Positions 4,286-32,475 of a stretch of 51,688 nt of DNA are shown in pieces. The stretch's first letter is position 1. Every line of letters starts with the position of its first letter. Source of the stretch: Perkinsus chesapeaki ATCC PRA-425 (Eukaryota; Protista; Perkinsozoa); NCBI GenBank assembly GCA_013115145.1, contig JAAPAO010000217.1:1-51688 (forward strand), given 5' to 3'. The notes under the pieces are model-generated. The model made no database searches. It had not been told where the DNA came from and saw only the letters and a list, made by a program, of their open reading frames with translations. Both the position numbers and the translations under genes were made by a program.

Positions 4286-5400
4286 TCAACCGCCTCGGCA
4301 GCATCCTCGACTAGTCGCAGCGTGCCTTGGTGTGTTGCCAGCTCCGAGTGTGATCGGTGTTGTAGTCGCCCCGGTAGAGTTGCCTGTGATGGCTAATGTC
4401 TGTAAGGGAAGTTTCTGTGCAATTGCTTCGAATAAAGCCACCACGTTTTGACCTAGATAGTTAGAAAACAACATTGGACGGACATAAAGGATTCACCTGT
4501 TTTGGCGCTTGTCTGACAGAAAACCAAACCATGAGTTATAGCATACTCTCGAGCAAGCGCTACGGGGACCCTGATGGGGAGTTACGCAGCCGGAAGGATA
4601 TGCTGCCATCACTCCTGGTCTGCGACGTCCATTTTATTTCCTGCAAGTGCCACAACGATGTTAGGATTGTTGACCATAGACAACTGCTTTATCCTGAACT
4701 CGAGCTGGATGCTGCTGAGCTGTCATATCATCTTACCAGTCCTTCGCTCTCTCAAAACTGGCCATTGACGTTTGATCGTACACCACAATTGCACAGGAAG
4801 CATTTCTATAGTACATCGGAGCGAGCGAGCGAAACCTTTCCTGGCCTGAAATGGGACCGTATACCGGCTGATAATCATATTGTGATCGTGAAATTGGGAA
4901 GAAAGTTTAACTTTGCGTTTAGTGGAGGCACGATACTGTCATAATTGAAGTACTTGTCGTAAAGCACAAATCCGTTAAACTGCGCCGCCCGGGAATCGAA
5001 CCCGGATTTTCCGTTTGGCAGACAGAAGTCGTAACCTTTAGACCAGCGGCGCGGACGAATTCTAGCGTCGTCGGAAAGAGTGGTCATCTAGCGTACCAGC
5101 AGTGTCCCATATCTCAAACTTTATCAGCCTGTTCGAGCCAGGAACTAACAAATCTTGCGTTGAGAATGCTGCGCCAATTGTCGTTTGAACAGTTTCCGCA
5201 AAGGAGTTGTGCACCTGACCAACCGACGCCGGGTTTAGCATGCCCTCGAAGACCTACAAAGCGTTGCACGAGCGAAGTCTTCCCGACCGACGCATCTCTG
5301 AGAGAACAACAAACTTGATAGAGTAAATGAATGGCTTAGCTCACCCAAGCAGGACTAGCTTATAGCCCTGCTTCTTGCTGGGCGATGCATCGACAGTCAT
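4286..5400 (-). CDS. RAB5: Rab5-family small GTPase, 7 exons
   Basis: Spliced translation [32 protein letters not shown]...TTIGAAF...FEIWDTAG|[23 protein letters not shown]...LAGNKMD...[19 protein letters not shown]...GCCRGG*. All G-boxes, the Rab5-type TIGAAF and SLAPMYYR, and a C-terminal CC are present. The paralogue (5A/5B/5C) was not resolved. Confidence 0.93.
4878..4980 (-). ncRNA. Candidate H/ACA-like small RNA immediately 3' of tRNA-Gly
   Basis: Short hairpin, then an ANANNA box (ACAGTA, 4934-4939), then a hairpin closed by TCGTG/CACGA, then ACA (4881-4883). Pocket spacing is longer than canonical, so this is speculative. Confidence 0.25.
4981..5052 (-). tRNA. tRNA-Gly(GCC), inside the Rab5 intron 4846-5096, same strand
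   Basis: 72-nt cloverleaf: perfect acceptor stem GCGCCGC/GCGGCGC, anticodon arm TCTGT-CTGCCAA-ACGGA, T arm CCGGG-TTCGATT-CCCGG. Confidence 0.95.
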
Positions 5401-5499
5401 AGTAGAATCTCAAGAGTGATGGAATGACTTGAACGTAACAGGCCAGCAGTTGAACATCAACATCGTAACATGAGATTAACACGTTTTAAGATATTTTGA

Positions 5500-8446
5500 A
5501 TCCAGAAGGCCATGGGCCCGAATGGTTATAGTTCAGATACCAAGGCTTAAAGTTGCTGCCTTCTCGGCTAGAAGTGTCAGAGAAAATGTGTGATAAAGGA
5601 GCCCTGAAAAGTGGACAAGTGAGAAGATAACCTTCAGAAAATAGGTTACCCCATCGGCGAGGAGATGTTGAGGGAATTCAGATCTCCCAAAGGCGAGTCG
5701 AGACCGTCCGAAACTGAGATGGCTATGGTGCAAACGCCTGCATCCTCGCGTTACCCTGGCCTTGAGGAGAGCTCATTTGAGAATGCGCAGGGGTTGGCAA
5801 GTCGAGCGTGATGATGCGCAGTTTGGGGCGTGTCAATGGAGAGTCCAAATCTTCGACCGACATCAACTAAAAGAGAGACATGAAGATTTCACCATCACAT
5901 CATATGTCAATCACAAAAGTCTAGTTCACCAACTAACCTCCGTGCTCGTGACGCGTGATGCATTTTTGAGCCGGCCAGCCTGAGGATCGTGTGCGGCGGT
6001 CCTACTGCCCAGTACTGCTTGTTGACGTGAAAGTTGGAGGTCGAAACTGAAGGACGCTTTGCATGCCCGGATCCACTTGACGCGAACCTGATGCCTGGCA
6101 GCCGCTTCGGTGATTCCTGTGCATCCTCGTGAGCCGTCTTGTCCAGAGGTCTGAGAAGGACAATGCAGGGAGACAACGAGTCAAAGGTAGCATCACCGAT
6201 CCGGCGATCCCTCTACTTCTCGAGCTCTCTGAGCTCGACTAAGCTGCAAATCCATAACGTGATTACCGATGCCCGCACGGTGAAGATTCGAAAGATACGT
6301 CGTCGTAAGACGGGATAATGACCTGAGCTCGAACACCCAAATACCCCCACAGTATCGCAGTTCGTACATGTCCGGGCTGAGAGATTGAACAACAGTGTCG
6401 AGTCGGTTGCGTTCTCCTCGCACCACACCGCTCCCACGAGAAAGCTGCTGTGAGAAAAGAATGCCCGACTTCGGGTCGGATCTGTTAAACATCGATGTGG
6501 GTCTTTTGGCCTTCGTTCACTTACTGGCCGATTTTTTCCAAATTACATGGCAATGGCTCACCTAGCAAAACCGCTGACTTCCTTTTCGTGAGCAGATCGG
6601 GTTTGGAGAGTTTATCAAAGTCGATAAGATAAGACATGCTGTTGGTCCGCGTGCCTGTGGAGAGGACTTGCTTCCCATGGGAAGGCTTTTCTACTCATTT
6701 TCATGTCCGCGTCGGGCAAGGGGGTGAACTTGCTCTCATGAAACGCTCGAGCAGCCATGCTTGGTCTAGGAAGCATCCTGAGGTTGAGCGTGCAAGATAT
6801 AAAATAGGTCAAGTTTTAGTGTACTTATCAAACAAAGGTATTCTTATTGATCCTAGCCCTCCACCCAGGAGATACGCATCACTCGGCGCGCGGCTCAAGG
6901 GAGACCCCCCAACGCTCTTTTTCTGAGAAATCCATGCAGTCCAACAAAAGTGGATTCGACCAGTGCAAAAGCAATGGGAAGAGGTGCTCCGGAACAGTAA
7001 TGATAGTCACGAAATAATGTAGTGTGATCTGGGATTGTTCTGTCTCCTCAAGAGATTGTCCTTATTCGAACCCCTTATAAAAATAGTCCTATTGAATCTA
7101 TTTAGCAACTTGCCCCTTCCCTTGGGAACCGGCAAGTAGAGTTGTCCCGTCGATGTTTGATGTCCGGGAATTGCTGACCTTATTAGCCTTTCGAAAGTAT
7201 TCCTCTTGCTCAGGTGTCAGTTCATAGTCATCATCACTATCATATATCGTAACATGCTTCCCGCTTCCTCTATTCTTAGTAACCTGGATATTACAGATAT
7301 GTTCGGATTTAAAACACTCCGGGCGGGGCTCGAACCCGCGACCACGGGCTTAAAAGGCACGCGCTCTGCCGACTGAGCTACCGGAGCTATGCAATACCTA
7401 CCGTCCCAATTTTCATGGCCTCCGCTCTATCAGTAATCTTCTTCATCACGGCTCTCTGCCTCTCTTCAATCAGGGCCTCGACTTTATCCCGCCGTGTTTC
7501 CGACGGAATGCGTTCATTGAAGTCGGGTATCTACTCAAGATTTGCCTAGTTGGTGAGTTCCCTCCAACGCACATCAACCGATCGCCATCTCGCATCATAG
7601 TTGGGCTTGTATCGAGTGTAGTCTGGGACTTCTTTATTCAGGATTTCTTTCCTGAGACCAACAGCGTTGAGGAAATGCAAGATTGCAAGATTTAAGACCT
7701 CATCCGTTCTTCTCGACTTAAGGTGAGGAATGCAGCGGATCCTTTCGATTTTGCCGGAACCGACTTGCTCCGTGTCATGACAGGTACTTGCTTTTTACGA
7801 AGCTGTGCTGCTGCTGCTGCAGTTGTTGTTGCAGCCTGTGCATCACGTTGGTGTTTATTTTCTGAAGTAGTATGAGATGTAAGTCTGTCTGGGTCGTGCG
7901 CGACGATAACGAATTCACGGATCGACGTCACACCCCGCCGGGGTGACCCTGGTCAGACATCTATTGCATTCTACCCGCCCCTGCTACGCAAATGGTTATA
8001 ACGAATGTAAAAGGCAAACGATAACCACCTCTGTGGCTGCTAACGTGACCGTATCTGCTCTCCTATCTGCAATTGTGGTATTCGTATAACGGAAGTCTCC
8101 CAGAGGAAGAGGTATACAAACACTAAGGGATTGCTTGGAACTAATATTCCACGACTTCCTCTCACAACCGGCTTGCCCACCTCTGGCGAGTCTGTGTTTC
8201 CGCAATAGATAGTTCATTTGTTCGGTGACCCCCAAATAACGGCGTTTTCGATGTCCTTTTTTCTTCAACTTCGCCACCATCGCCGCGGTATCTCCAAAAT
8301 TGTCCGCCTGAGGGACACCAATCGTTCCTCATCACGGGAACTGCAAGACTCACCGATTTAGCTCTCCTTAGCTGACGCCTTTCCTTTATCATCGTCGAAT
8401 AGTCATACCACGGATCGATACCGACACCTATTACATTTATACTCAT
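5500..8446 (-). CDS. Large hypothetical multi-exon protein, host of tRNA-Lys (ends approximate)
   Basis: Exons join in frame: ...ERMR|KEILNKEVPDYTRYKPNYDARWRS|IPDFNERIPSETRRDKVEALIEERQRAVMKKITDRAEAMKIGT|VTKNRGSGKHVTIYDSDDDYELTPEQEEYFRKANK|... The start candidate is MSINVIGVGIDPWYD at 8446. Confidence 0.6.
7315..7387 (-). tRNA. tRNA-Lys(UUU), inside intron 7284-7401, same strand; one anticodon-stem mismatch
   Basis: 73-nt cloverleaf GCTCCGG TA GCTC AGTCGGCA GAGC G CGTGC CTTTTAA GCCCG TGGTC GCGGG TTCGAGC CCCGC CCGGAGT G, followed by TTTT. U29.C41 is a mismatch. Confidence 0.88.
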
Positions 8447-8738
8447 AAGAACAACGGCACCATGCCCTTAGAGAGTTTAGGAAAACGTGACCGATTCGGA
8501 CAATCCTACAAATGTAAAGTTCCCCTACTCGAACTAATACTGAACTGCCTCTACACTACTACCGCCAAGACAATGCAGTAGACAAGACCAAGGAGAGACT
8601 ACAGAGAACTATAAAGGATGATGCCTAAGATAAATTCTTGCCAATGACTATGTCAAATTATCCCTGCGAATGACTTATACTTTGGTATTTCCAGACACTA
8701 ATGCCCAATTATCGAGATGTCACTGGTATTGAGGGTCC

Positions 8739-9180
8739 CTATGCCTCGACGAGCAAGTCATGAAGCTTACCTAATTGCTTTCGTAATGCATCTAACTCAG
8801 TAGCTGTAGACTTGCCAGCAGCAGACACCTCACCGCCTTCAATAATATAACCATCAGAGGACATGAAGCGAAATCCAAAAACTTTCCCACACCGAATGGA
8901 ACCGGGCAAACGCCGAGCTTTGTACAAATGCCACTGATGATAGTATTAAAAGCCACGATGCTACGCAGGGACATCCGACTTCGCCTTGATCCCGAAGTGA
9001 GATACTTTCGAGGTGATAGACTCCCTCGCCGCCAAGGCTCAACTTGACGAGCAGTAAATTAACAACACAATAATACAGGTCGATAAAAAAGGTATCGAGA
9101 AAGTGTAGCGTTTTTTGTGGCTCTAAACCGAGTCTTCCCGGTGACAACTCTAACACTTCGGGGATGTTTTGGTTACTCAT
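8739..9180 (-). CDS. Hypothetical protein
   Basis: MSNQNIPEVLELSPGRL... start and a last exon ...ELDALRKQLGKLHDLLVEA*, with GT-AG intervals between them. Confidence 0.45.
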
Positions 9181-9374
9181 TAGGAAATGGGAGAAAAAAC
9201 GACTAATGCGAGCACAGATATCAGGCACAGCGCCTACAACTACATGAACTATGAATGATTACAGAACGTTCTTATACACGCAAGCGCCGGAGGGGAAGGG
9301 GTAGACAGCAGGCGCAAAGCCACACACTGTGCGGGGCGCAACGGCCGGCTGCTGCCCCAGACACTGCAAAAGCT

Positions 9375-11107
9375 TTAGAATGAAATAAGATTGTCAAAGT
9401 CACCAACACCATTCAGCATGTCATTTGTTATATCCAATACTAGCATGTGTCCTGGACTATGGGTTATTAATAACTCCGGATGAGCTGAGAGAGCACCAGT
9501 TGCTGAGGTAACACCGCAACACCAGAAGACATATATCTGATAGGCACGGAAAGAATGCAAAGATGTAGTGACTGTGGATCGATGAACCCTTGCCGTCTTA
9601 AACCCTAACATGCATACTCATTAACCGAAGTCACCTTCACTCTGCCCCTCAACGAAGCTTCTCATAACGTTGCTTGAAGAGCTCTTATCTCCAACAGGCA
9701 AAACGGTATAGTGGCATTCAAAATGCCTTTTGATAGCTATTGAAATTGTTCAATTTCGCGACTCTATCAAACCGTGTTGTATGGGACGTTCCCGCTGTTA
9801 CAAAATGGTTCACTTTTCTTACATCATCCTTCTCTAAGGTAATCCTATCACCATAATCTGGCGGCTTAGTTACATCAACTCCGATCATTCGACCATCACC
9901 GATATGCATTGGTCTACCGTGGGCGAGTGGATACTTGCTAGTAACCTCGATGACCCGAGAAATCTACACAGTGCGAAAAGATTCCACGGAATGCTTAGAG
10001 GTTCGCATTCACCTGATTCAACTTGTACGGTCGCATAGACACAACCAAAACACCCCCGAAAGGACCGGCAACCTAAGGATGTATAAATCGATTAAGCGAT
10101 CGATTATGATTAGCTCACCTTATTGGGAATATTCGTGCGGTACATCGCAACATTCTTACCTTCAACCATATGCCTGGGAGGGACACCTACAACAAAAATG
10201 GCAAACATGAAACGCTTCGCTCCGCCTAATTCCTACCAGCTTGAGCAAGCTTATCCTCCCAAGAGAAGCTGCAACCAAAGATGAATCCTGTAAGGCCAGT
10301 GGCAGCAACGTTCTCTGGTAAACTCTGGTCCGCGGCGGCGGCGGCGCTGAGAACTTCTTTACTCTCACCGTTATAATGTATAACATACTTCGGCAAATCT
10401 GTCGAATTGGGATATCTTTACGCACTCGAAGATTTCAACGAGTACATCCATTTAACCGAGACCGTACCGCCGATTTTACCTTGGATGAACTTTTACGCAG
10501 TTTTCTCCCGGGAAATAATGCACATTTCCGAAATATCAAAGGTACGCACTAAAACTGACAGAGACTTCTAAAGCAGCAAACGATGCCAGAAGGGAAGGGA
10601 CAGCGAAGCCAAGTACTCAAGAAGGCGATGAAAAAGAGGGAAAGAAAACTCAATGAATTTCTGAACAAAGAAACTCAGTTTTTCCGGACAAAGGCCACAA
10701 CTGGTAGAAGTTTCAGCACCTATCTGCCACTTTCCGTGGCGAATAGACCCGACAGTTTCGGCCGAGACGGTGTACATATCTTCAACAGTCCCAGTGATAT
10801 GCGGCAACCTACCTGTAAGGATATCCGCTCCAGGAGCCACAACCGTTGAAACAAGCCTTAGTCTTAGATGATGCTGACCATCCACGGTAGAGTCGATTGT
10901 CTCAAGTAGCGGACATGCTTGGGGATTCAACGAGCAGAATGATTGAAAATCGTCCTTATAGTGGGATGGCAATATAACAAGGTTAGCCTGACACATGCAG
11001 GATGCTATCTTTAAAGGATTCAACGACGCTCCCCTTATTTCCGCCGACTCTGTAGAATGATTATTACAAGTATTGCAGTTTGCCCTCCTTTCGAGACCAA
11101 ATGGCAT
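9375..11107 (-). CDS. DUF1445 / UPF0317 putative hydro-lyase (D-glutamate cyclase-like, single domain); start uncertain
   Basis: Family motifs in order across exons: QANLVILPSHYKDDFQSFCSLNPQACPLLE; GADILT|DLPKY; GFIFGCSFSWE; GVPPRHMVEGKNVAMYRTN; GPFGGVLVVSMRPY; YPLAHGRPMHIGD; PDYGD; VFWCCGVTS; ITHSPGHMLVLD. Confidence 0.92.
10208..10227. repeat. Copy 1 of a 20-nt intronic motif, TGAAACGCTTCGCTCCGCCT
   Basis: Lies in the 50-nt intron 10187-10236 of the minus-strand DUF1445 gene; identical to 29545-29564. Confidence 0.85.
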
Positions 11108-11519
11108 CACTGTCGGGTCAAGAAGTCACCGGAAAATTCTAATAAGCGTGTCACTTCATTATCAATAATAACTTGTAGGACACTGCAGGTGAATTCAGCG
11201 GGCGAATTCAAAAAATTAAACCGGGGATAGTTTCATTACCAAATTGGCGTGCAACGTCGCTTCCATTCTCCCCAACAAATTAAGATATTTTTCCTCCTCC
11301 TCCTCCACTACATTCCTCAGCGCTTCATACACACCCAACTCGGTATTAATTCAAAGAAATTTTCATCAAAAACTTTTCAAGCCGAAATCGAAGGCATGCT
11401 TACAAGTGTCGAATGCGCTAAGTGAAAAACAGCTAAAACGAAAACGCGAGGTGAACCGTCTACAAAACAGCTACCCCTACAATTTGATAATCGTTATATT
11501 GCCGGTGATCGAATAACTA

Positions 11520-12331
11520 CTTGAACATGTCCCGGTGCTTTTCCCGAAGTCGGTCCTGTCCACTTTTGAGCTCGACAATCATCTCGAAAAGCTACTGCTT
11601 CAGAGACATCTACTTTGCTTTTCGAAAGCCTAATAATGACAAGCTATTCAAGGGAACCCTTGAACACATCAGTAAAACTAAAAACCTCCTGTGGGTGAAT
11701 CACTGTATGAAATGGCCTGATAATTATGAAAACCCTCGGGGGCTTTCGATAATATTCAGCGGCGTAATATCGCGAAGCAAGTCTTGTCGAAGTCCTAAAA
11801 ACTAGGTATCCATCACTGATGGACCATCAGTCCCACTGATAGAGCTATAGAATGACAAGTGTACGATATTTGGGTTGGTAATTGTGGTGGTTAAAGATAA
11901 CATTTGAAATACTTCTGCTCTATCCTCATTTACTCAACTGGTCTTGAAGCTATTTTCCACACTGAGCCTTGGATGATATTCATGAACATTCGAGAAGGCA
12001 CCAAACCAACTGTAGGATTCCAACCGATGCCACTGACGTTAGTTCCGATGAATTTCGGTTATACTTTTCCCTAGCCCTTCCCCAACAGCTATATTACACC
12101 ATTTGAAAGCAGTATGTTTATCACTCCCGTGCCCCAGAGTCACTACCTATCCCTGAGCTCCTTAACCACATTATTATGCCTTTCAACGGCCTTTTCTAGG
12201 TCTAGTTTGAAAGGGCTGTAGAGCTTGGTATCACCGTATTGCCATTTTTCGGTTTTTCCATCAAAAGTAACATCACATAACGTCCCATCGTATCCAGTTC
12301 TAAACTGCCATGTCTCTAAAGGGGAAGGCAT
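11520..12331 (-). CDS. Hypothetical multi-exon protein (end approximate)
   Basis: First exon MPSPLETWQFRTGYDGTLCDVTFDGKTEKWQYG...VKELRDR ends at a GTAG donor; later exons are tentative. Confidence 0.4.
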
Positions 12332-12684
12332 TCAACCGATGAAGAAATGAACTCAAAAGATTCCAAATAGGTTGACTCGTGGTCTTACAAGGTATCTTTC
12401 AATTCAATCTATGGTTGAATCTACACGAGTAAAGCCCCCCCACTTCAATAATATAAAGAGGATAACTTGACTAAATGATATTGATAGAATAAGAGACTTA
12501 CAATAGAAAAGAAATGGAGTTTATGATCAGTTCCCATAAGTGAGATGGTAAGTAAGGATATGACACCTTTAAAGGTTCAAGATATCCCTGTTGCACGCAT
12601 GCACAAAGTAATATAATGGCGAGCGATATTGTAAATGGTTTTTTGCCCAAACTGTAATTTCCGAGAAGATTCCAAATGGGTTGA

Positions 12685-13510
12685 TTGAAATACCTAAGCG
12701 AGGATACTGTAATCCCTTTATTGAAATTTTGTAGAATGTTAATTAATATTTTATTTATTTTACCGACCGTTACCGTCGCTTCAAATTTTCCTGACACCTC
12801 TAGCTCCATTAGAAAGCTTCGAGAAGCCGTCTCCGAGGTCGCCATCCAACTTGACGTTATCGTCGGAGCACTTGACGAAATTCTCGGGGAGAAGCCGAAA
12901 ACCGTTCCGAGTTCACTCGAAGGGATTCTTACCGAAAAAGAGGGCGTTGTGGTGGACCCGGCATGGCTTAAGAAAGCCATTGAGATAATGTACAATAGTA
13001 AAGATGCCACAGTACCGCACTCTGAAGAATTTGGATACTTCTCGAAGCTAGAAGATATGCGCGGCAGGTTACTAGCGATAAGTGTGGATAGGGTTTTGGT
13101 TTGGGAATGGTCTATGTGGTTTATATTACTATTTATTGATACCTCCTTAACAACAGTTTTAATGATCTATGCAAAAGGAGGAAGGATTGATGTTAATGAT
13201 AGAGTCGCCATGTATGATTGGATATTAAATCAGGTGAGATTAGGGATGTTTAATATTAATAGGAAATAAAGGACTAGGCTACTCTACTAGGGATGTTTAA
13301 TATTACAGAATCGTCCATTCCTTTTTCAGTTATTACTTGGTATTATCATTACAATAATACTTCGAGCTTTATCATTTCTCTTTGCTGGTGATGATAACCT
13401 TCTTGGACATATAATGGATGCAGCTTTGGTGACCTTGAGAGTCTTAGGTGTTATTACCATCCTTATCAATCAAACGGATGGCATTAGCAATGACAAGGTA
13501 ATATATTAAC
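12685..13510 (+). CDS. Hypothetical membrane protein
   Basis: 194-aa ORF with a coiled segment and hydrophobic stretches, followed by a further hydrophobic exon-like segment (LVIITIILRALSFLF...). Confidence 0.4.
13241..13305. repeat. 18-nt direct repeat TAGGGATGTTTAATATTA (13241-13258 and 13288-13305)
   Basis: Directly visible. Confidence 0.85.
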
Positions 13511-13777
13511 AACCTCAATAATATTGTGGAGTGTGCGGTTAATCGGCAAAAGTGTAGTTGACCTAAGTTATAAGTGAATCTCTATCTATAAACTTTACAC
13601 TATATAAAAGCTAACATGGGAAAATATCTAACTTTTTCGTAGTCTTCTATTCGACCACAGTCCTACGGCTATATTCTGTCCAAATGAACGGGTAGTAGTA
13701 CGATAAACCGTTTTACGCCTACTACCAATTTCCTTTATTACCAATTTGCTTTATATTCTCACATCGCTGGTTCTGAC

Positions 13778-14540
13778 AATGTTTCGTCTACTGATAACTC
13801 GTGCCGAATCAAGTGTCACTTTTTGCACTGAACGACGAGAGTTGGTGACATTGAATTTGCCGGCAGATATAGGTTACTATAGTAGAGTGGTACTAAACCT
13901 TCTCAACAGGAGTCGGTTTTTTTCGGTCTACTAGTAACACATTTTCTAGTCTATCTAGCACAATGGTGATGCATTCAGCCGATATGTGTATTTCCATGAG
14001 GGCTATTGCCTGTGTCGTGGGAAGAGCGCTGAGTCTGGAAGCATCAAATCGAAGCAAAGGAAAATTTAGTTTCATTAGTTTTTCCTCAGATAAGATCGTC
14101 TTCGTCGACCTCAAGGAGCAGGTCAGTTACTCCACAGCGGAAAGTGTCTCATTACGCTGGAATAAGAACGCCTGATTTCAGTAATATGCGAAATGTCGTC
14201 ACTGGGGTTCGAACTTGGGTGTCTTTCGCCATGGCTATGGCTGGCTGATTCCCCATGACCCCTTGCCTGTGTTATTAGAGTGTCTCTTGTAATGTACTTC
14301 AAGCATTGGGACGTCATTCTTGGCGCGGTTTACAATTTGCACTAAGGTTGGCGGGTTGAAATGTGGTAGTTCACCGACAGACCTTGCAGCTCGAGCGTTA
14401 TACATGAAAATTGTGTCATAGTCAACTCCATTGGGAGTAATATGATTCTCGCACGATTTGGCGGAAATGTGGTAGTATTTATCCCCTCAGGATCACCCAG
14501 TTTAGAAGGATGTAGGCCTAGAGTCATCAAGGGGGATTAA
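13778..14540 (+). CDS. Hypothetical multi-exon protein (tentative)
   Basis: Exon-like segments between GT/AG sites, e.g. NMRNVVTGVRTW|SVSCNVLQALGRHSWRGLQFALR. Confidence 0.3.
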
Positions 14541-15041: not shown

Positions 15042-17866
15042 ATGAGCTCTACTAGTCTTCCTGGTGGAAAGACGTCAAAGGTGCGGATGAGCACAAGTAA
15101 GGGAAAAATGGAGGATCTTACTGTTCTCACTTATAATGTGGATACTATGATAAAGGATATGCCACAGCGAACTAAGATACTTGTCGAGGTAAATTGGAAT
15201 CTGCATGCTTCAACCTAAGATTCCTCTCTCAGGTTCTACAGAATCGTGATTATGATGTTGTTTGTCTTCAAGAAGTGTTTAGCAGTGCTGTTAAAGAGGC
15301 CCTTCATAACGGCTTGGAAGATCAATATTATGTAATTACCATTTTTCCATCAGAATTTTCCGCTAGTTTTATCACACAGTAGGTTAGATTACGACCTAAT
15401 TTTCAATGTGTTTTGTGCCTGTTTTCTCGTTTTTTCCATTTCTGCTTTGGATTTCAATGAGTTGTGATACCTTCTGAGAATCGAGGCCGCTGAGCTTACT
15501 CGGGTACCAGAAATGTTGTCGTGAGAAAATCAAATGTAAATATGCCATTTTCGAAATTTCGCCAATATTCAAATTCTTCGGCAGCGTGGTAGTACTTCTG
15601 AATTCTGCCTTATTCTTATTCAGGTATTGTCAGCGGATCACTCAGCTCCATTTTACCCATTTCAATCCTTTCTGCCATCGATGCTTCTCACGATAGTCGC
15701 CAATGCTTTTCCACCGTAATAAGAATAGTGCCCTCCCTGGGAATCGAACCTGCGCCCTCCAAGCCCGTATTGAATTTTCTCCTTTTTTATGATCATTTCC
15801 TATTCGGTAAGTTCTCCACAGTAGAGCCTATCTTGCTCAGATTCATGCGTGCGTTGGCATTCGTTGCAGCCATACTACTTTGTCCGCCAGTTATGAGAGT
15901 GGTTTCGACTTATGTAAGCTAAATTGGCGTCGATGGGATTCGAACCTGCGCGCATCTCCTGCTCTCAGGTTTTCCACTGCCTACAGTACGCTAAATTTCA
16001 TAGCGAGGGTCGTTCGCAGCCGTTTGATTATATGGGATTGACTATACTACTCAATAAGAAAAGGTTCACAAACGCCAAGGTGAGTGTTTTTACATGAATT
16101 ATTTATTCCGACTTTGTGACTTCTTCGCGCACTTTAGGTTGATTGTGCGGAACCGTTCCAAGTTCAAGGCTATACTGCTCCAATAACAGCACTAGGATGG
16201 ATCTGGTTGTGGGTAAGTTATCGTTTGGATCACGAAGTTGTCGGCGGTAGGGATTGAAAGTGTTGCCGCCGTCTCCTATAGAGTTCAAGTATAATGTGAT
16301 TGCAGCTCCAGACTGTAATTTCTAGTTCGCCGCAATTTCTGAGAGAATCAAATCTTCCGTAACGGTTTGAGCTCACGTTAATTTTCAGACATTAGAAATG
16401 ATGCCGTATGGTTTCAGGTCGAATGGACTTTCCTACGCCCAGGATATCTCATCGTATCTGGTGAACTCGGTGGTGCAGCTGGTCAAACATTGACGATTGT
16501 TGATGTTCATTTTATATTGGGAAGAGAACGTGATTGTGTGAACCCGAACAGGAAGGCCCAGGCTGACGAGATTCTTTGGGCTGTTGATCAGTAGGTCGCG
16601 GGTTCGATCCTCGGCGAGTGTATATTTCAAGTCTCACTCATGCGGTAAATTTCAGAGAATTACAATAATCAATGCGAGAGTTCGAAATTCCTATTACAGT
16701 CCCATTGATGTAGGAAAGTCGACCATCAGAGAGATTACGGCACGAAAGCCGCCTACTAGTTTGTTCACGACTGTACGGTGTAACTTTTGAACTTATATTC
16801 AAAACATCAATATCAACTCGAAATATCATATTTTAACCTCGCATTTGTGAAGAGGTAAATTGTAATAATACTTTTTGCACAGTTTATTAGCCACAGTTCG
16901 TGCGAGGTTGGTCTAACAAGAGTCCTTTTCAGAGCCATGGGTGAAATACACAATTCTTATTGCTCAGTTATTCGCCGAAGAACTCTCAAGTGATTCTGTG
17001 CGGCGATTTCAACTGCTCAACATTCAGTCTAGAAGAGGACAAGATGGATCACGTTGAACTTATGGTGCGAAGTGCGCGTGCGTGCAGATTTATTGTGCCA
17101 TTCTGTCCCATTTTTGGTAGATGTTCCATCGTAATGGATATCAAGATTCCCTAAAGGTCTTCAACCCCGAAGCGGGCCGCCTCCCCGATGACCAGATGCG
17201 TAAAGTAATCGCCAAAGCAATCGAAAACAGGCATCATCAATCCACCGAGAAGAGCGTTGAGGAATCACAAGATAACAAGATTTCTAAGCCTTGTGAAGGA
17301 AACAAGGAGAACAAAGACAATGCAGTTTCTGAAGACGAACCCAAGATACAGGAGATTACAGAAGAAGACGAAACGACAACGTTAATGCCAAAAGAGTGCG
17401 GTAGCGTTGAGGAAATGCAAGAGAGCAAGTTGGAGGAGGCAGAAGTGGACGAATCTTTGGAGCGTCTGAAGTTACCAATTACTTGGGATGGGGTATGTTG
17501 GAGGCTTTTCAGGGGAAATTTGGTATAAATAACTTTTCAGGTTAATAACCCGTCAACAAGACTTAGCGATCCTGGCGCCGAGCTAAGGTGTGATTATGTG
17601 TATTTGAAGGATGCCCCAGAACCGGAGCCTAGAACTATCAAATTCGAGGAAAAGGAGGTTGGTTTTATCAGTGTTTTTCATACCGTATTTCTCTCTGATC
17701 AGATGCGTATAGTATTTGATGGTCTGACAAGTCCTGCTGAAGATGTTGGCCCATTGCCTATTGTTTCTGATCATTATGGAGTTCAGGTGAGCGGCAGCAG
17801 TAGCAGCAGCTGCGTTTGTTGAAACTGGATATTTTTCAGGTTACTTTCAGGCTTACTAGAGTTTAA
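15042..17866 (+). CDS. Endonuclease/exonuclease/phosphatase (EEP) superfamily hydrolase, sphingomyelinase-like, with internal hydrophobic segments
   Basis: Spliced motifs LTVLTYNV, YDVVCLQEVF, LTIVDVHF, RKAQADEIL, VILCGDFN, DYVYL and SDHYGV; stop TAA at 17864-17866. Confidence 0.88.
15465..15488 (-). pseudogene. Weak tRNA-3'-end-like relic in EEP intron 15332-15623
   Basis: Reverse complement GGCCTCGATTCTCAGAAGGTATCA resembles the relic at 15729 but is degenerate. Confidence 0.3.
15729..15755 (-). pseudogene. tRNA 3'-end relic (positions about 47-73) in EEP intron 15716-15840
   Basis: Reverse complement GCGCAGG-TTCGATT-CCCAG-GGAGGGC-A has a B box and exact 7+5+7+1 spacing; the T stem only partly pairs. 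Confidence 0.6.
15925..15952 (-). pseudogene. tRNA 3'-end relic (Ser/Leu-like) in the 55-nt EEP intron 15914-15968
   Basis: Reverse complement CGCGCAGG-TTCGAAT-CCCAT-CGACGCC-A has a canonical B box and spacing; the intron is too short to hold a whole tRNA. Confidence 0.7.
16239..16258 (-). pseudogene. tRNA 3'-end relic (positions 54-73) in the EEP intron starting at 16213
   Basis: Reverse complement TTCAATC-CCTAC-CGCCGAC-A; also forms one arm of a hairpin with 16263-16271. Confidence 0.5.
16594..16620 (+). pseudogene. tRNA-Lys-like 3'-half relic at the start of EEP intron 16591-16967
   Basis: GGTCGCGGGTTCGATCCTCGGCGAGTG versus tRNA-Lys GGTCGCGGGTTCGAGCCCCGCCCGGAGTG: the first 14 nt are identical and both end in GAGTG. 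Confidence 0.65.
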
Positions 17867-19775: not shown

Positions 19776-19895
19776 CGAAATAACAGCGCGAAGTTTGGAA
19801 GTTCATTTTGGTTGTACTTGTTCCGGATCGCTGCACCGTCCTCCACACACTTGCTTATTGGTTATTGCTCAGGGTTCCTTTTTAATCCGCTTAAA

Positions 19896-21107
19896 ATGTC
19901 CTCTAATATCGTCAAAAGTGTCGCATCGGCTCTATCATTATCAGCTACTATAGTTGTTGGTTGGAACCAAGATTCTCACACAGCTGGTGCACGGTTAACC
20001 CAATCCTTCATGAATCAAGATGATGTTGACTTACTCCTGGCTAAGCATGGTGACCTCGCAGCTTTCATTGCTTGGCCTGATGCTAACCATAGACCTACTG
20101 AGATTATTGGTCAACCCGACAGATATGGTTGGAGTATGCCCAGTCATTTCGTTAATTTCCCACCTGGGGAATCCTATGATTCCAAGACTTCATTGGCGAC
20201 GAAAGACGCTAATGGCCGTATGGCTCCCAATGCAATCAATTCTATGGTTCACTTTCGAGAGAAGGCTCTCTACTATAAGGATTTTGACAAGATTGACTAC
20301 ATAAGCGATAATATGAAGACATTGGATAAGGCTTTGTATGAGACTTCGCCCCTACTCCCTAACATGGCCGATCCTTTAATGCTTAGACGTCCAGTTGCCG
20401 ATCGATTCAGAAGGGAGTCAGTATTCTCTGTCGCTCATTACTTTCAAGATATCCATAATCCATTCCATTGCGCAGATGCTGCCGATATGGGTGGTTTCAG
20501 ACACACCAAGAAATGTGCATTCTGTAATAATGGCAAACAGTCAAACATTCATACTATTTGGGATGCTGATATGTTTGACTATGACCTGAGGAAGGAATTC
20601 GGTGATGAATACATTGATCAAATGGATGGTTTTGAATTTGGTCGTCAAAAGTTCCAGGACAAGTTCTACTCTATTCTCCAGAATAAGTATAATGCCTTGG
20701 AGAAGGAGGATTCAAAGAAGGTTGAGCAATGGAAACAGGAGTGTAGCGGTGACTTTTTGGAGTGTATCGAACTTGTTGGAAAAGAGACGAGAGAGTTTTA
20801 TCTTCAGAACCAAGGCAGTCTCTATGACGGCGAGAAAGATAGTACTGTAGACGAAACATATCTTGACAAGTACAAAGAAGTCGCTTATGAGCAAGTGATC
20901 AAATCGAGTGTTCGTTTGGCCAGTCTTTTGACAAGGATGGCTGAAGAACTGAGAGGAACCAAGGGAGAGATGCCCAAGAGTGCGCCCATGGACGCAAGTG
21001 AAGCGTCTTCATCCCAGCTGAGGTCACGGTCTAGATCAAGCTCTGGATCAAGATCTGGTTCAAAGTCAAGGTCTAGATCTAGATCAAAGTCTCCTGTTAA
21101 GAAGTAG
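19896..21107 (+). CDS. S1/P1 nuclease family protein, intronless, with N-terminal signal peptide and C-terminal RS-rich tail
   Basis: Signal-like MSSNIVKSVASALSLSATIVVG, then WNQDSH (W1/H6), WPD, SHFVN, HYFQDIHNPFH and NIHTIWD, giving the full set of tri-zinc ligands. Ends RSRSRSSSGSRSGSKSRSRSRSKSPVKK*. Confidence 0.92.
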   Translation: MSSNIVKSVASALSLSATIVVGWNQDSHTAGARLTQSFMNQDDVDLLLAKHGDLAAFIAWPDANHRPTEIIGQPDRYGWSMPSHFVNFPPGESYDSKTSLATKDANGRMAPNAINSMVHFREKALYYKDFDKIDYISDNMKTLDKALYETSPLLPNMADPLMLRRPVADRFRRESVFSVAHYFQDIHNPFHCADAADMGGFRHTKKCAFCNNGKQSNIHTIWDADMFDYDLRKEFGDEYIDQMDGFEFGRQKFQDKFYSILQNKYNALEKEDSKKVEQWKQECSGDFLECIELVGKETREFYLQNQGSLYDGEKDSTVDETYLDKYKEVAYEQVIKSSVRLASLLTRMAEELRGTKGEMPKSAPMDASEASSSQLRSRSRSSSGSRSGSKSRSRSRSKSPVKK

Positions 21108-24586: not shown

Positions 24587-25080
24587 AGCGACTTGGACTA
24601 GATAACAGCCTGCATGTACTGTTTAATAGATGGAGAGGAATTCGTAAGATTATAAGCATTCACGGCTCTACTGGTGAAAAGCGATGCCGAAGTCTGGCCG
24701 TTTCAAGGAGTTTGCGCACTGCGAAGGATATTTGCGCATGCGTGCAGATTGAATAAACGCGCAATACGGAATGCGATTGCGCAGTCGTACTGTATTGATA
24801 ATTGAAAAGGTCACTTTCGCACTTCATAAGAATCGTACAATATTGCTGATCGTTTGACGAGGAGATTTTCAAGCTGTGGGAGATGTCATAAGTCACACTG
24901 TGGCGATCAATCTATAATCGATCATAGTTTTACCACTGTCTCCTTGGCCTGCGCATGCGTGCAAGCCTTGACATCAATTGCATGATTATTACACAAAACA
25001 ACATCAATTACCATTGAAATACAATGCATTATCTAGACTCATCCGTGCATTCCCAAACAACCTAAGATTCGAGTTAGATT

Positions 25081-25337
25081 TTAAGTAGACTCCCATTTGT
25101 CAATGTCAACTGTGCAATCCATTTCACTGAGCAAGTCGACCAGCTCGTTCCATATCTTACGGGACATGGACCATACTGAGGCCATCCTCCGATCATGTCG
25201 ACGGGCAAAATCAATACAACTTGACAATCTTCAAAATTAACTTTTTCATCAGACGCAGAATACTTTTCGCTCGCCCAAAAATTGATTAAGATGATCTCTT
25301 TGTTGTTGTTTGATGTCCGTTGTAAAAATATCGCCAT
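25081..25337 (-). CDS. Small hypothetical protein (5' end uncertain)
   Basis: MAIFLQRTSNNNKEIILINFWASEK|LSSCIDFARRH...IWNELVDLLSEMDCTVDIDKWEST* across one GT-AG intron. Confidence 0.4.
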
Positions 25338-28300
25338 ATGAGAAAGAGCTAGGATTGGCTATTAACAAATTAAGGAGTCTTACCGCAAAACAAGGTGAGG
25401 AAAGTGTTGCACTTAACAAATGAATAGATCTTTGTAACGGTGTGAACAAGCACTTTAACATGAAAGCCATTTGACTGTGGAGAACTAAACAACTGAGATT
25501 CCTTGTCGAATTTCAAGCCCATAATTGAGCAGTCACTAGGGGTATAATATCATAAAAATAGATCGAATGTTTGTCGTTGTTTGGTTGCTCGGTGATTCGA
25601 ACCATCAACGGGTTGATATTTACGTTTATTATTATTTATCTTATTTTGATACCATCTGATATCCAGTTCGAGCACAAATCGAAATGCGTAATATAAAGAA
25701 ATTGCAAAAACGATACCGATCTTATTAGTTATATTGTGTCATGCCATTGTAATTGGAAGCAAACAATAATGTCACCAATATTGACCAATTTGCTACCATT
25801 AATTTACTCTGCATGTCATAGTTAACCTCCTGGTTGAATCCAGCAAATATTCAAGTGAATTTGAGGTGTCCCAAAAAGCAGTGTAACATGTACCGGAATG
25901 ATAGTATTAATATTCAAATTTGGCTACGGATCCGGTCATTCGCTTTTTCGTTGTTTCAGGGCCGCTCGCTGCTCGTTCAGAGAGTACTATCGCTTTGATG
26001 ACTCGAAATAAAAAGGGTTGTAGAACTATCAAAAGGAAAGTCACTAAATCTGGTAAAGATATTTAAAAATTAATGAGTAGTGGTTTATTTATCTTTGAAG
26101 AAATTTAGAAACTAGTCTCGGAACTCGGAAGCCCATTTCACTTAAATCGCCTCCAGGAGATAGAGAAACGTTGATTCTCACCGTTCCGGTCACCACAAGC
26201 GATCTTTTGGCAAATTATTTTACAGATGGAATAACATAATGGAACAATATAATTAGTTTTATGCATACTTTTAAATCAATAGTTTTTTGTCGAGATAATA
26301 AAGTGTCTGGTCGAACTGTTGGGGTATCTTTTGCCGCTCTAGCTCGAACTTCAATCACCAAACTTTATACTGGATTTGCCGGACTGCCGGAAATTTGGTA
26401 ATGGATAATGTCCCCATTTTTCCTGAAATTTTCCGCGTACCGATTAGTGTTCGGCCGGATTCATTCCCCCCTTCCCCTCAGAAATGCGTTCTTCTCCTGC
26501 TGATCTTGGTGTTAATCGCGTTAATCGTGAAAGGTAATAGTGAGGGAAGATTTACGGTGGAGATGTCCGACAGCTACTGTCATGTTACCGAATCTGAAAT
26601 CCATTCCCAAATTAATTTTTACTCGTCGTTCGCACCGATCGACGAGGCAGAAATCCAATCCAGCGAAGTGTATCAGCTTTGCTGTATTCAGAAGAATGAC
26701 GATCATATTGTGGAAGCAGATGAGAATGAAATTACAGTTCTTACCTGCTTCGCTCGTAGGGGGCGCTATCAATATTACTAATATTCTCCCAAGTTCGAAG
26801 AGTATTGAATCATTATGAATGATATACAACGGTGATAGATATGTAAAGATGTGATTATTCATATTCGATAATATTGAATTTATTAGTATTATAGGACTTG
26901 TTTTTAGGTATGAAGAGCTTTACCGTAATTACAGTAATCCGAGATTTCTGGCATCGGTGCCAATAAAAAAGGTAATCAGCTCGTTACGATATTTTTACAT
27001 ATAGTATTTAGCGGCTGACAAAAGAGAGGCAGGAGGCAGCAACGCCGAAACAACAAGCAAAAAATGAAGGTCATATTTTTGCCGGGCATTCCGATATTTT
27101 TCCGTGAAATTTTCCGGATTTTCTTGTCTGATATGACACAAAAAAGGAGACAATAATCATGCGGGTGAATGATTATAATTTAATTGCTGGGAGTACGGAT
27201 GTTTGGTTCGTAATAAGCCCCGCGCATGCATTAGATTCTCAATCGTAAAATGTGTCGTAATTTCATATGGTCAGCATTCTCGTTGTTAATCTTGTAGTAG
27301 AGGTTCTGGGGATGATGGTACCGAAGAATAGGAAACGTTTGACGAACGCCTAGCTCGTGATTCGACAGATTTGGGAAAAATGGACGGTCGAATATGGATC
27401 CCGTATAGATGTATCCGAGAAAGCGGTCGAAATGGCAAGGAGGAAATACGAAGGGCGGCCTATAAATGGCAAAATGCAGTAATAGTTGGAGGGAAGTGGA
27501 TTTCCGTTGAAGAAATGTTAGGGATTTACGGCCCGATATGTTATTGAATTAATTAAACTTGAACCAATAATGTTTTCACATTGAGGAAGACGTGACTCTT
27601 ATTATCCTCATTATGGGACTATTTGGTCGTTTGGATTTGATCAAATACACTTGATGTCTTCGGTGTTTGAGCGGACTCGATGTTGAGATTGTTTCTGTAG
27701 GCGAAGTGGAGATAATGACCAAGTTGCGAGAAGGAATGTGGAAAGGAGAAATGCAGTAAAAAGGAAAATACGGGAAGGTCATAAAACCGGGCTGTAGATA
27801 CCATAACATAGGGAAATCAGAAAGATATTGGCATTCCTAGAAATGGTCCAAGTTGAGGATGGCCATGAATTTAGAGAAAAAAGAGAAATCTTTTTGTGAT
27901 GGATGGGCCTCTCCAGTCATCTCGCCACGCGAAAGACAAATGGTTTGTTTTTAAAAGTTGAAAAACTCGGCGACCCTTTGGCAAAAATCGGGGGTCGCTT
28001 GTACATTTTAATAATAGTATAAGTTATAATTGTTTGGCGGTGCAAGTGAGCCGAACTTCGGCTGCCGAAGAGTGAGAAATGTGTACAATATATTTCCACG
28101 GGACCGGTCGTGCGGCTGGCTCTTCTCCTTCCAACGGAGCGTTTGGTGTCGGACGTCTGCTGGCTTTCGTGAGCTGCTTCGCCGCATCTAGTTGTTAAAA
28201 TAAGATTTTTTGGTGCAGAGAGCGCCAGGAAATTCTATATAAGAATCTCAGTTGAATTTTGTGTAATGTCAGAATTCCAGATGGTTCATTGTCTTGGAAG

Positions 28301-28449
28301 ATGCCCCCCTCCCGGGAAGTGGATCCTTGAGATTGTTATTTCTGTCAGCACCTTCGTCGGCTAATTTGTCAAGTACACAGAGAATAGCGAATCCATTGGG
28401 CGAAGAGGAGCTCAATGAGTTTCGATCATTGCTGGTGGAATATTTCGGT

Positions 28450-28590
28450 AAAAGGAGGATATTTTTTTGGAAAAAAATATGGAAATTTCGCGGACATTTA
28501 TGAAGATTTAGGTTAAATCTTGTATTTTTCCGGAAAATTGGTGGGAAGTTTGGGAAAATCTTGCGAAATTCGGGTGACGCAGTTTTTTCG
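28450..28590. other. Phased A/T-tract segment (about 10-11 nt period)
   Basis: A/T runs start at about 28450, 28462, 28471, 28483, 28496, 28506, 28513, 28525, 28534, 28546, 28555, 28566 and 28583, separated by GG/CC/CG-rich spacers. Confidence 0.6.
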
Positions 28591-29299
28591 GGACTTCGAG
28601 AGATTCCGCGCAAGTTTCCTAGGTAGCAGTGGTTTAGAATTTCTGTAATCGATTCTACGAATCGATCATCTAATCGATCTTCGCTATGGATCCTTTGCTT
28701 TACTTGCCCACACCAGCGCCCTGGTTGCCTGTGAACGGACGGTCGCCGATTCTTAGGCTCCCGGCGAAAAGCTCTTCTTTTCATCGATGACAACAACTCG
28801 GGCGAAATTTCGAGATCGGAATTCGAAATTGCCATTTCCACACTGATAACACGGAGCAGTCATCCTGGAGGGCTGAGGGCTTTGCAGAGGAAGAGTGTTT
28901 TGCAAGATATGGATGATGAATCAAGTAAGAGTCCTTTGGATTCATCTCATTTCCTTCGGACGCGTACGAGTACCAACGATCCTCGAGAGATTTTCTTGGA
29001 GCGATGGAGCTTTTGCCGCCCGGGCTCTTCTTGCATTCCTATCTTATCCTCGACTGGTTCGGATTCCTATCAAGTTGGATCTAGAAAGAGTAATAGCATA
29101 TACTAAAATGCTGCGAGTAAGCCTTGCTTATGTATACATATTTATAAAATAATGCACCGAACGTCACTTCTTTCAACGGGTAGAAATATAATATACAAAC
29201 TTCAATCCCTATCACTCTCTAATAGATGGTCATATGAGCTACTTTATAATAGTAGTCATCGGGGAGGCTATAGGTGTTCTATACTTTATATCCCTGAAG

Positions 29300-30290
29300 T
29301 GTACGCGCTTACTTATCAAGTGATCTAATACGGATTACGTTGCGGGCTCGGTTTGGGTGTCCAGAAGAATGCCCTCCAAGGCTGTTCGTACTAGTTGGGA
29401 TATCTTAGCTGGAATTCCAGTTTTGAAGTGTGATGTTTTCCGCCAGGTGTTTATGTTCGCTTTGCAGAGTTCCTCAAGCAAGCTGCAAACGGCGCTTATT
29501 ACACCGATCGTTTATTTAAAGTAGAAAAAGAAAACGTATATTCGTGAAACGCTTCGCTCCGCCTGGAATTCGTCAGACTCTTGATGCTGATGGTAGTGGT
29601 TCAATATCAGCCGATGAGCTTCTGCCGTTGCCGCCGCCTGAACCGTTATTTAAGGAGTGGAATCTTTTGAATACAGATGAGAAGTGGAACCGGTGAGTGG
29701 CTGGAGATGAGGCGAGTTGGTGTGGTTGATGGTATTCAATTTCAAGAACATGCAGGGAGATATGCGCCGTGGTTCGTGAGCGTGTAAAGTATGAATGATT
29801 TCTTATGGAATCGGCGACTGATTATCATTATAGTGCTTGCTTATTAACATTGAAAGGATGTCACCGAGGGAGGATTCGGGGGATGCTGCATGAAGTATTA
29901 TACTTTATGTTTCCGGGCTGTGAAATGCTATACGGTGGTACGGTTGGATCATTCAGGTATCTTGGAGAGTCTGTACAGATGCCGGATAGACTTCTTTCGG
30001 GGGACGAAGAGGTCGGCGGATGTAAGGTTGCATTTTGACCTATTGTGTATCTTTCAAGCTTCGAGCTTGGATATTCCGGAGGCCAGTGTTTTTCAGCCCA
30101 CCCTCTCCAGAGCCTACTATCCACCAGACTTCTAGTACATTCGCGAGACCCTCTCTGGGCAGGTGAGAGAGTTGTAATCGTCGTTGACTGTGGCAGACAT
30201 TGCCAGAGAAATTAGGACGAACTTGGTTAAGATATCCGTGGCTATTGATGCTTTACATGGGGCTCTACAAAACTTGAGAAAATAATGCTG
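29300..30290 (+). CDS. EF-hand-containing protein exons (may be the 5' part of the downstream gene)
   Basis: LFK|TLDADGSGSISADEL joined across intron 29521-29576 gives a canonical 12-residue EF-hand loop. Confidence 0.65.
29545..29564. repeat. Copy 2 of the 20-nt intronic motif TGAAACGCTTCGCTCCGCCT
   Basis: Lies in intron 29521-29576 of a plus-strand gene; identical to 10208-10227. Confidence 0.85.
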
Positions 30291-30619
30291 GACAATTTTG
30301 GTAGCGAATGGATCTTGAGTAATTTGGTGAACTACATCTAAATTCGGCACAACTGTAGACAGGCATATGATATATTCTGCTGTGGTTTAGAGGCGGTGGC
30401 TCGAGATAGGGAGAGTCGACTCGGCCGGTTGCTGAAATTGGAAAGAGAAAAGCATTTTATGCGAATGAACAAACCAGCACTGTACAGTTATAGCAAACAA
30501 ACGACGCGAGGGACAGGCGCTGGGTGAGTTGACATTTCGGTAGCAAGAATTCATTAAGGGTCGAGTCTTGGATGCATTAGAACAACAATCTTGTGAAGGA
30601 TCGTACATCTGGGATTTTC

Positions 30620-32475
30620 AGTACTGATAAGAATTGACAATGTGGTTTCGCTGGGCTCAATGGAATCGTGAGAGACTGCATCTGAAATTGACTATAGAGT
30701 TAACAAGGCAATCACTTCGGGATGTACACAATCTCTGTTGAAGTATAAATTGATCCTGTGTGATTCCAGCCTCACTATTGGCGTTGGCGAACTCACACTT
30801 GACTGCAGCTACTCGGCGAAGTGTGGTGGATTATTGTGTTTTAGAGATTACGGCTTTCGTGCGAGGGATGATGTGAAGAAAACGACAAAGTCAATACAAG
30901 TGTATTTGAAAGGTAGCAGCAGAAATTCCGATACCGGGACTCGAACCCGGGTCGCCTGGGTGAAAGCCAGGTATCCTAACCAGCTAGACTATATCGGAAG
31001 GTGTTCGAAAAGTGGATTTGAACTCGGCTTGGATTTCAGACCTGAATCAATCCCGTCGTGATCTTCATAACGCCCGCGTACAACTGGCTGCTCTTTTGAA
31101 AAGATCGTCTAGGAATGCACAGCGTCGCGCTGAGTAAGTCCACATCGATACACAATCTTCTCCATGCAACCAGTTCGTCGGTGTTATATCTGGCGTTCTC
31201 ATTTCAGAGCGGCTGTTGAGAAAGAGAGGGTCAGACTGGAGGAGGAAGCCAGAAGGTAGGAGCTTGTCTGCTACTACGTGATGATATCATCGCGAAAAAT
31301 ATTTTTAATTTTGGTTAATTGTATTACCGATTTGTAGATATTATGTAGGAATTAGATCCTTTTGGAAATTCACTTTCTGGAATATCTACTCGACAAATGA
31401 GAGTTTCGAAGTGGAACTACGAAGAAGCGTTTGCTGGGAAAACCCATCCGTAGCATGACTCTCCAGAGAATTGGAGAAATAGTCCTCATAGGATTTCCAA
31501 AAGTCATTGATAATGAACATGAAGCGTGTTAGCGGTGACTGATAAATTAATGTCTTCACATTACGCTACGTTCGGGGATTTGGGTGAGAGAAAAATTAAT
31601 GGATGTTTACAGTGTTGTTATTTTCAGAGCAGCTGTGGTCCGTCATCGGTCCAACACAGTCCTGTCTTCTATGAGATTCAGCCAAAGTGAATTGGTGAGC
31701 TTTCGGACATTCTCAACAAGCAGGCCACTGACGGCTCGGGTGGTGCAGGTGATTCCGGAGGAAGATGACGAGCTCAGTGAGGAGGAGTCGGTGAACTCTG
31801 TGGAGATTAGAAGGCAGCAAAATATCGAACGGAAGCGATGTAGTGAGGGGTCAGGGAGTCAAAGAGGAACGCTGGCGGTATTAACAGCTTCTGGACTCGA
31901 AAGAGTGATTGCGATAAGGAAGAGCAATATAGAATTATCAACGCTGCAGTGGTATTGTTGAGGGACATCGCGACACAACTGTTGAAAAATCATAACACCG
32001 GCGAATCAGACTGGCGAGGTTAATCAAAATTTTTTGTTAGGAGTGAATTCGTATCGGGAATCTGTAAAATATATTGCTTTGGGGCTCAGTAGGGGACTTA
32101 ATTTCCACGTCATTTCCACGGCTCGCCTTTCAGCCATCATACAGCCTCTGGCGGATGATCTCAAGCATCGATACAGTCGGAGCAGGTCTGACAAACATCC
32201 TTTAGTTCACTTCACCAAAGGGGAATGAGTCAGCTGCTTGGTTTGTAGAATAAACGGTATAATTGGAAACATGGACTGGGACGGTCGCACAGTGTAACAT
32301 TGAATTTGAGATATGGGGAGGGGTTGAGTTGAGGGAAAATCGGTATGAGAGATTCGGACGAGTTTTTGATTCTGAAAATATGGCGGCAAAGGACATCCCA
32401 TCCGACTTGAAAAAACAGATGCAGCGGTCGCTAGTAAAGGTAGTTGAGAAAATACAAGATAGAGCAAGATTGTGA
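30620..32475 (+). CDS. Hypothetical coiled-coil protein, host of tRNA-Glu (boundaries approximate)
   Basis: In-frame joins DYGFRARDDVKKTTKSIQVYLK|DLNQSRRDLHNARVQLAALLKRSSRNAQRRAE|AAVEKERVRLEEEARR, and a probable last exon ...KIQDRARL*. Confidence 0.5.
30926..30998 (-). tRNA. tRNA-Glu(UUC), antisense within intron 30913-31039
   Basis: 73-nt cloverleaf TCCGATA TA GTCT AGCTGGTTA GGAT A CCTGG CTTTCAC CCAGG CGAC CCGGG TTCGAGT CCCGG TATCGGA A; all stems pair. Confidence 0.96.

Follow-up and report, generated by a model that had tools for sequence, protein, structure and literature searches.

All three transfer RNA (tRNA) genes of a 51,688-bp contig of the shellfish parasite Perkinsus chesapeaki (JAAPAO010000217.1, assembly GCA_013115145.1), analysed here in its entirety and called the window below, appear to be nested in introns of protein-coding genes. 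The tRNA-Gly gene sits in a true intron of Rab5, tRNA-Lys in an intron of the neighbouring gene, as judged by comparison with Perkinsus olseni, and tRNA-Glu quite probably in an intron of a gene whose annotated model is disputable. The explanation that we favour, with a probability of about 0.72, is that these are ordinary nuclear tRNA genes with their own RNA polymerase III transcription, nested in pre-existing introns of polymerase II genes. The window provides a clean example of such nesting and not a rule: an intact tRNA-Gly lies in an ancient Rab5 intron, and a decayed remnant lies in the same intron of P. olseni.

The tRNA genes were searched for with ARAGORN and with the Rfam family RF00005 (gathering score 29). 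At the gathering threshold of the latter, both approaches identify exactly three of them, all on the minus strand:

4981-5052, minus strand: tRNA-Gly (anticodon GCC), intact, found by ARAGORN and scored at 57.2 bits by Rfam; on the same strand as its host
7315-7387, minus strand: tRNA-Lys (UUU), found by ARAGORN and scored at 61.8 bits by Rfam; on the same strand as its host
30925-30999, minus strand: tRNA-Glu (UUC), intact, found by ARAGORN and scored at 67.3 bits by Rfam (at 30926-30998); antisense to its putative host

A permissive Rfam scan, extended to E<=10, yielded no additional tRNA match anywhere in the window, intergenic DNA included. An earlier model reading of the bare letters (the sequence-only reading hereafter) had counted exactly three full-length tRNA genes and no intergenic one, and this count is borne out by both programs. 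All three genes form a canonical cloverleaf scoring above the family threshold. No mismatch is present in the acceptor, anticodon and T stems of tRNA-Gly and tRNA-Glu; the Lys copy, already described as mismatched, does carry a single mismatch, U29-C41, in its anticodon stem, and nonetheless reaches the score given above. As to the internal promoter elements, the B boxes of the three genes match GGTTCGANYCC exactly (that of tRNA-Gly being GGTTCGATTCC), and A-box regions are readable in all of them, the weakest in tRNA-Gly. No sequence is shared among the flanks of the three copies.

The public annotation was consulted for positions 1-31.1 kb of the window, and the host of tRNA-Gly is the best documented of the three:

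4286-5400, minus strand: the Rab5 gene FOL47_003701, 214 amino acids (aa) in seven exons
4846-5096, minus strand: Rab5 intron 3, GT-AG, 251 nt, phase 1, falling between WDTAG and QERF and holding tRNA-Gly

The Rab5 model that we spliced independently is identical to the NCBI protein FOL47_003701, and its introns measure 47, 43, 251, 43, 42, and 44 nt, i.e., 42-47 nt for the five that are devoid of a tRNA. The Pfam Ras profile runs on across the junction, with the exon ending at 5097 covering profile positions 21-56 and the exon starting at 4845 covering positions 58-93; excision of 4846-5096 therefore restores the switch II motif by joining WDTAG to QERF. The tRNA-Gly gene thus sits in a true intron of Rab5. 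An intron at the same site and in the same phase is found in the Rab5 genes of P. olseni (434 nt in one assembly and about 418 nt in another), of Perkinsus marinus (106 nt), and of the chromerid Vitrella brassicaformis (100 nt), while Toxoplasma Rab5C has no introns. Full-length Perkinsus Rab5 proteins were retrieved with a query that aligned one Rab5 exon to an unrelated protein of 250 aa. On this comparison the intron is old and tRNA-Gly is a later occupant, because the site and phase are common to P. olseni, P. marinus, and Vitrella.

When the third introns of P. chesapeaki and P. olseni Rab5 are aligned in full, their best local match is exactly the tRNA part. In the two P. olseni assemblies, positions 16-72 of tRNA-Gly reach local scores of 16 and 20, for a null of 8 +/- 1.2, and none of 1000 dinucleotide shuffles reaches these values. 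The P. olseni copy is a relic: its anticodon loop is mutated in both assemblies, and its B box is kept in one of them (GGTTCGACCCC) and lost in the other. Since this decayed tRNA-Gly occupies the matching place, the nesting predates the split of the two species; the tRNA-Gly gene, on this evidence, was present in the Rab5 intron of their common ancestor, and is intact in P. chesapeaki and decayed in P. olseni. Local alignment detected no significant similarity to tRNA-Gly in the P. marinus Rab5 intron. Statements about gain and loss go no further back than the ancestor shared by P. chesapeaki and P. olseni, because Rab5 identities left the three species unrooted. Outside the tRNA, the rest of intron 3 no longer aligns between P. 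chesapeaki and P. olseni, so that the intact tRNA-Gly copy most likely owes its retention to selection or to conversion by other copies. The passage from intact copies to relics, which the sequence-only reading had pictured as a life cycle, is in this way supported by an actual pair of orthologous introns, and it is this Rab5 pair that shows the fate of nested tRNA copies.

The second tRNA lies in the gene next to Rab5:

5486-8864, minus strand: host gene of tRNA-Lys, annotated as a 595-aa protein with no Pfam domain, located between Rab5 and the D-glutamate cyclase gene
7284-7401, minus strand: GT-AG intron of 118 nt, made up of 14 nt, the tRNA-Lys gene, and 31 nt

A 21-kb locus of P. olseni (L004) is colinear with positions 1-13.5 kb of the window, and 13 exon segments of the Lys-host gene match it in order, with 36-82% identity. 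The exon just upstream of tRNA-Lys (7402-7530) is 58% identical to P. olseni over 45 aa; the one just downstream (7179-7283) has a BLOSUM62 local score of 42, compared to 25.7 +/- 4.4 for shuffled sequences, 7 of 2000 of which reach it; and the second exon downstream is 82% identical. As the exons on either side are conserved and the splice phases of the gene agree between the two species, 7284-7401 is, by this comparison, a true intron. The orthologous P. olseni intron is present and measures 108 nt; no similarity to tRNA-Lys was found in it, one candidate relic being not significant. These two loci together uphold the view that the tRNAs were placed in ordinary introns that already existed, since P. 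chesapeaki shares the Rab5 intron with P. olseni, P. marinus, and Vitrella, and P. olseni has the Lys-host intron without the tRNA. The related statement that an intron deprived of its tRNA has the normal intron size holds for tRNA-Lys (45 nt), and needs a small correction for tRNA-Glu (52 nt instead of 54).

Other introns of the Lys-host gene deserve mention in their own right. The 47-nt intron at 7652-7698 (minus strand) has a long near-identical stretch (AATCTTGCAATCTTGC and more) in its 49-nt P. olseni counterpart (L004, 7788-7836) and is read by tBLASTn as a conserved peptide, whereas the other introns compared, namely the two that neighbour tRNA-Lys and the non-tRNA part of Rab5 intron 3, align poorly or not at all. 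A conserved element within the intron, or else an alternative exon, may account for the 47-nt interval. An 82-aa open frame at 7549-7794 was rejected: its matches in the representative library are chance matches only, and it is mostly intron according to the P. olseni comparison. The intron that follows the tRNA-Lys one, at 6923-7178 (minus strand), is 256 nt long and contains GGGGTTCGAATAA and GGTCGAATCC; its P. olseni counterpart (L004, about 8282-8360) is 79 nt long and contains GGGTCGAATCC. The 10-mer common to both is not significant alone, as it is matched in 56 of 1000 shuffles.

How would such genes be expressed? The cloverleaves are intact and A and B boxes lie inside the genes, so that RNA polymerase III would most likely transcribe each tRNA independently. 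We regard them as independent polymerase III genes because their promoters are intact, their orientations relative to the host are mixed (two sense, Gly and Lys, and one antisense, Glu), and tRNA-Lys is followed directly, at +1, by TTTT, a canonical terminator. The P. chesapeaki genome is compact, rich in tRNA genes, and filled with introns, and introns would hence represent a large share of the DNA in which a new tRNA copy can land harmlessly. Single copies, as members of multi-copy families, would be dispensable, and could stay intact in some lineages while decaying in place in others, a process expected to leave behind introns that are larger than before and contain remains of tRNAs. How the copies came to be there is something that we infer and do not show.

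Several observations nevertheless weigh against this account. Just TTT is present at +1 of tRNA-Glu, whose first run of four T residues lies at +44, and the first such run after tRNA-Gly is as far as +224, within the next exon; both situations are unusual for polymerase III genes, and leave room for weak termination or, in the case of tRNA-Gly, for maturation from the host transcript. In addition, the intronic status of tRNA-Glu rests on the logic of reading frames and on a probably fused annotated model (see below). Finally, the location of all three tRNAs in introns, and of none in the approximately 41% of DNA that is intergenic, represents a mild excess that could hint at a real preference.

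The idea of decay in place can be extended to the rest of the window, where a pattern search for GGTTCGANYCC with at most one mismatch returns 13 occurrences, versus 4.3 expected, a number reached by no shuffle. Apart from the B boxes of the three tRNA genes, they include:

15740, 15936, and 16600: B-box-like motifs in the EEP gene
12015: B-box-like motif in the D-glutamate cyclase gene
14205, 21667, and 25593: B-box-like motifs outside annotated genes
47873: B-box-like motif beyond the annotation consulted

Such motifs also occur in other introns of the tRNA-host genes and of the EEP gene, and this would fit the picture of tRNA genes decaying where they stand. In these relic-bearing introns, Rfam detected only an 11-nt T-loop motif and recognised no tRNA. 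A more ambitious version of the same picture, which we put forward as an unlikely one, is that tRNAs colonise tiny pre-existing introns above chance, that their decay is a main source of intron length and sequence, that the polymerase III promoter core outlives the rest of the gene, and that some terminator-less sense copies, such as tRNA-Gly in Rab5, are matured from the host transcript.

The sequence-only reading had gone further and proposed introns as the dominant home of the tRNA set in this lineage. Introns could indeed be a preferred location in perkinsids through targeted insertion or selection, for instance because they offer open transcribed chromatin or a coupling to host expression. 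The mild excess described above speaks for this possibility, as does the retention of tRNA-Gly in P. chesapeaki within an intron whose remainder cannot be aligned to P. olseni. However, in the annotated part of the window (1-29,368 bp), coding sequence, introns, and intergenic DNA account for 33%, 25%, and 41%, respectively, and introns thus for 38% of non-coding DNA; with random placement in non-coding DNA, the probability of finding three out of three tRNAs in introns is about 0.05, a rough figure given that the annotation is imperfect both ways. This is a sample of three genes, and one of the cases, tRNA-Glu, is unverified. Moreover, neither of the two host-tRNA pairs that could be checked (Gly and Lys) is intact in P. 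olseni, one of them being a decayed relic, and B-box relics are also found outside annotated genes, at the three positions listed. No intact tRNA was detected in the syntenic P. olseni locus L004, in two other P. olseni loci, or in one P. marinus locus (74 kb together), which is compatible with chance given the densities involved. A preference of this kind therefore strikes us as doubtful: the pattern is not clearly beyond chance, and a system-level claim is not established from three genes.

A different objection concerns tRNA-Glu alone, which might be intergenic, or part of an untranslated region, if two genes have been wrongly merged into one model. The relevant features are as follows:

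29369-33983, plus strand: annotated gene model spanning tRNA-Glu, 427 aa, its end inferred from the last LC8 exon
30913-31039, plus strand: putative GT-AG intron holding tRNA-Glu, 127 nt, with an in-frame junction, within the annotated gene span

With 1.28 kb of coding sequence in a span of about 4.6 kb, and with what looks like a separate LC8 gene at its end, including a Dynein_light match at 33334-33516, the 427-aa model is probably a fusion of two genes, one of the EF-hand/coiled-coil type and one for an LC8-type dynein light chain, and it probably needs to be split accordingly. The LC8-type exons lie at about 33.2-33.98 kb, and an AT-rich gap at 32.6-33.2 kb separates them from the EF-hand/coiled-coil gene. 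This likely gene boundary is well downstream of tRNA-Glu, though, and removal of the GT-AG interval 30913-31039 joins the two frames exactly, linking ...VYLK to DLNQ.... The open frame downstream of the tRNA has no ATG and cannot start a protein; if it is coding, it must therefore be spliced to something upstream. The exons flanking tRNA-Glu stand at the 91st and 97th percentiles of coding potential among all open frames, values that are only suggestive since codon bias is weak in this genome, and the range for flanking exons extends down to the 56th percentile. No ortholog of the Glu host was found in the P. olseni comparison, nor any transcript; the two RNA runs listed are both tiny, with a word share of 0.00 each. 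Taken together, these elements make a location of tRNA-Glu outside an intron unlikely, and its intronic position, as deduced from frames and splice sites, quite probable. Accounts of the three loci in which the flanking exons join in frame only once the tRNA interval is removed are consequently correct for tRNA-Gly, on the basis of Pfam and of the NCBI model, and for tRNA-Lys, on the basis of P. olseni, and are no more than probable for tRNA-Glu. For annotation purposes, the intervals holding the tRNAs can be treated as true introns, with that of tRNA-Glu as a probable one.

Two attempts at consolidating the Glu host were abandoned. Chaining of its exons by codon bias was halted after 70 codons, the bias being too weak, and was rejected as evidence. 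The S1/P1 nuclease gene (19896-21107, plus strand) was rejected as an anchor, its P. olseni match sharing no neighbours with the window; this best match, with 50% identity, is on another locus (L002), in contrast to the Rab5 side, which is colinear over 13.5 kb. A 7-nt direct repeat, TTCAAAT, is also present around tRNA-Glu, at 30904-30910 and 31016-31022, with a gap of 14 nt on the 3' side of the gene and of 16 nt on the 5' side. Such a repeat arises in 30 of 500 shuffles, and it is a possible but unproven insertion duplication.

Intron-hosted small nucleolar RNAs (snoRNAs) and mirtrons have no promoter of their own, share the strand of their host without exception, and are released from the intron by cleavage. 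They have in common with the Perkinsus tRNAs that a small structured RNA gene lies within an intron of a polymerase II gene, and the sense copies, Gly and Lys, could by analogy with intron-hosted snoRNAs be cut from the host pre-mRNA or from the excised intron by RNase P and RNase Z, in a polymerase II-dependent manner. Consistent with this, both copies are on the host strand and, in the case of tRNA-Gly, no run of four T residues is found inside the intron. In contrast to snoRNAs and mirtrons, however, all three Perkinsus tRNAs have intact internal A and B boxes, tRNA-Glu is antisense and so needs its own transcription, and tRNA-Lys is directly followed by its canonical TTTT. In Caenorhabditis elegans, furthermore, just 56% of intronic tRNAs share the strand of their host (Sagi et al. 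2016, PMC4999229). That the sense copies are matured from the host transcript is accordingly quite improbable in our opinion.

Lastly, that tRNA-bearing sequences created the introns themselves, by introner-like insertion into coding sequence with their own splice sites, is very improbable, and largely refuted for Gly and Lys by the comparisons available, because, even though the tRNA makes up at least 60% of the Lys and Glu introns and B-box-like motifs stand at the start or the end of other introns of the same genes, Vitrella and P. marinus, both without the tRNA, have a Rab5 intron at the identical site and in the identical phase, the Lys-host intron exists in P. olseni with no tRNA similarity, no direct repeat of at least 6 nt surrounds Gly or Lys (the one at Glu being within reach of chance, as indicated above), and the flanks of the three copies are unrelated. 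The introner or invasive intronic elements of protists such as Amoebophrya likewise form repeated families that fill short introns in an alveolate parasite lineage; those elements give rise to introns where they insert and have repeats or duplications at their ends (PMC7789003), whereas the Perkinsus host introns predate their tRNAs and no such ends were found.

Ordinary polymerase III genes nested in older introns, the explanation that we retain, have a clear precedent. The arrangement itself is already well known from nematodes: 44-47% of the 609 tRNA genes of C. elegans are intronic, which is approximately what intron content predicts (Sagi et al. 2016, PMC4999229), and intronic tRNAs can thus not be described as merely sporadic in other eukaryotes, as the sequence-only reading had it. 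As in C. elegans, the Perkinsus tRNA genes lie inside introns; the difference is that the introns of Perkinsus are tiny (about 45 nt), so that the tRNA occupies at least 60% of two of the introns considered here. In addition, 32-52% of host-tRNA pairs are conserved between Caenorhabditis species (PMC4999229), as opposed to none of the two checkable pairs that is intact between P. chesapeaki and P. olseni. In P. marinus, five tRNA types account for more than 500 copies, an unusually large number for a parasite, and Dada transposons insert into the tRNA genes of this species; tRNA genes inside introns were not described in that work (Kojima and Jurka 2013, PMC3706591). The window showed no Dada-like element, and a full-text literature search turned up no description of nuclear tRNA genes located in Perkinsus introns. 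If a genome-wide excess of intronic tRNAs were true, Perkinsus would be a system in which the turnover of small-RNA genes visibly shapes introns, and one in which to examine how splicing of a 120-nt intron coexists with a polymerase III gene that fills most of it.

Two further observations were made along the contig. In the EEP gene, the 65-nt intron at 16592-16656 (plus strand) starts with GTAGGTC and runs straight into a sense stretch resembling a T arm and acceptor (GCGGGTTCGATCCTCGGCGAGTG), the splice donor adjoining the relic of a tRNA 3' end. At 12685-13266 (plus strand), a 194-aa open frame for which no gene is called is 41% identical over 206 aa to P. olseni locus L004 (E = 3e-37), and is likely a missed gene.

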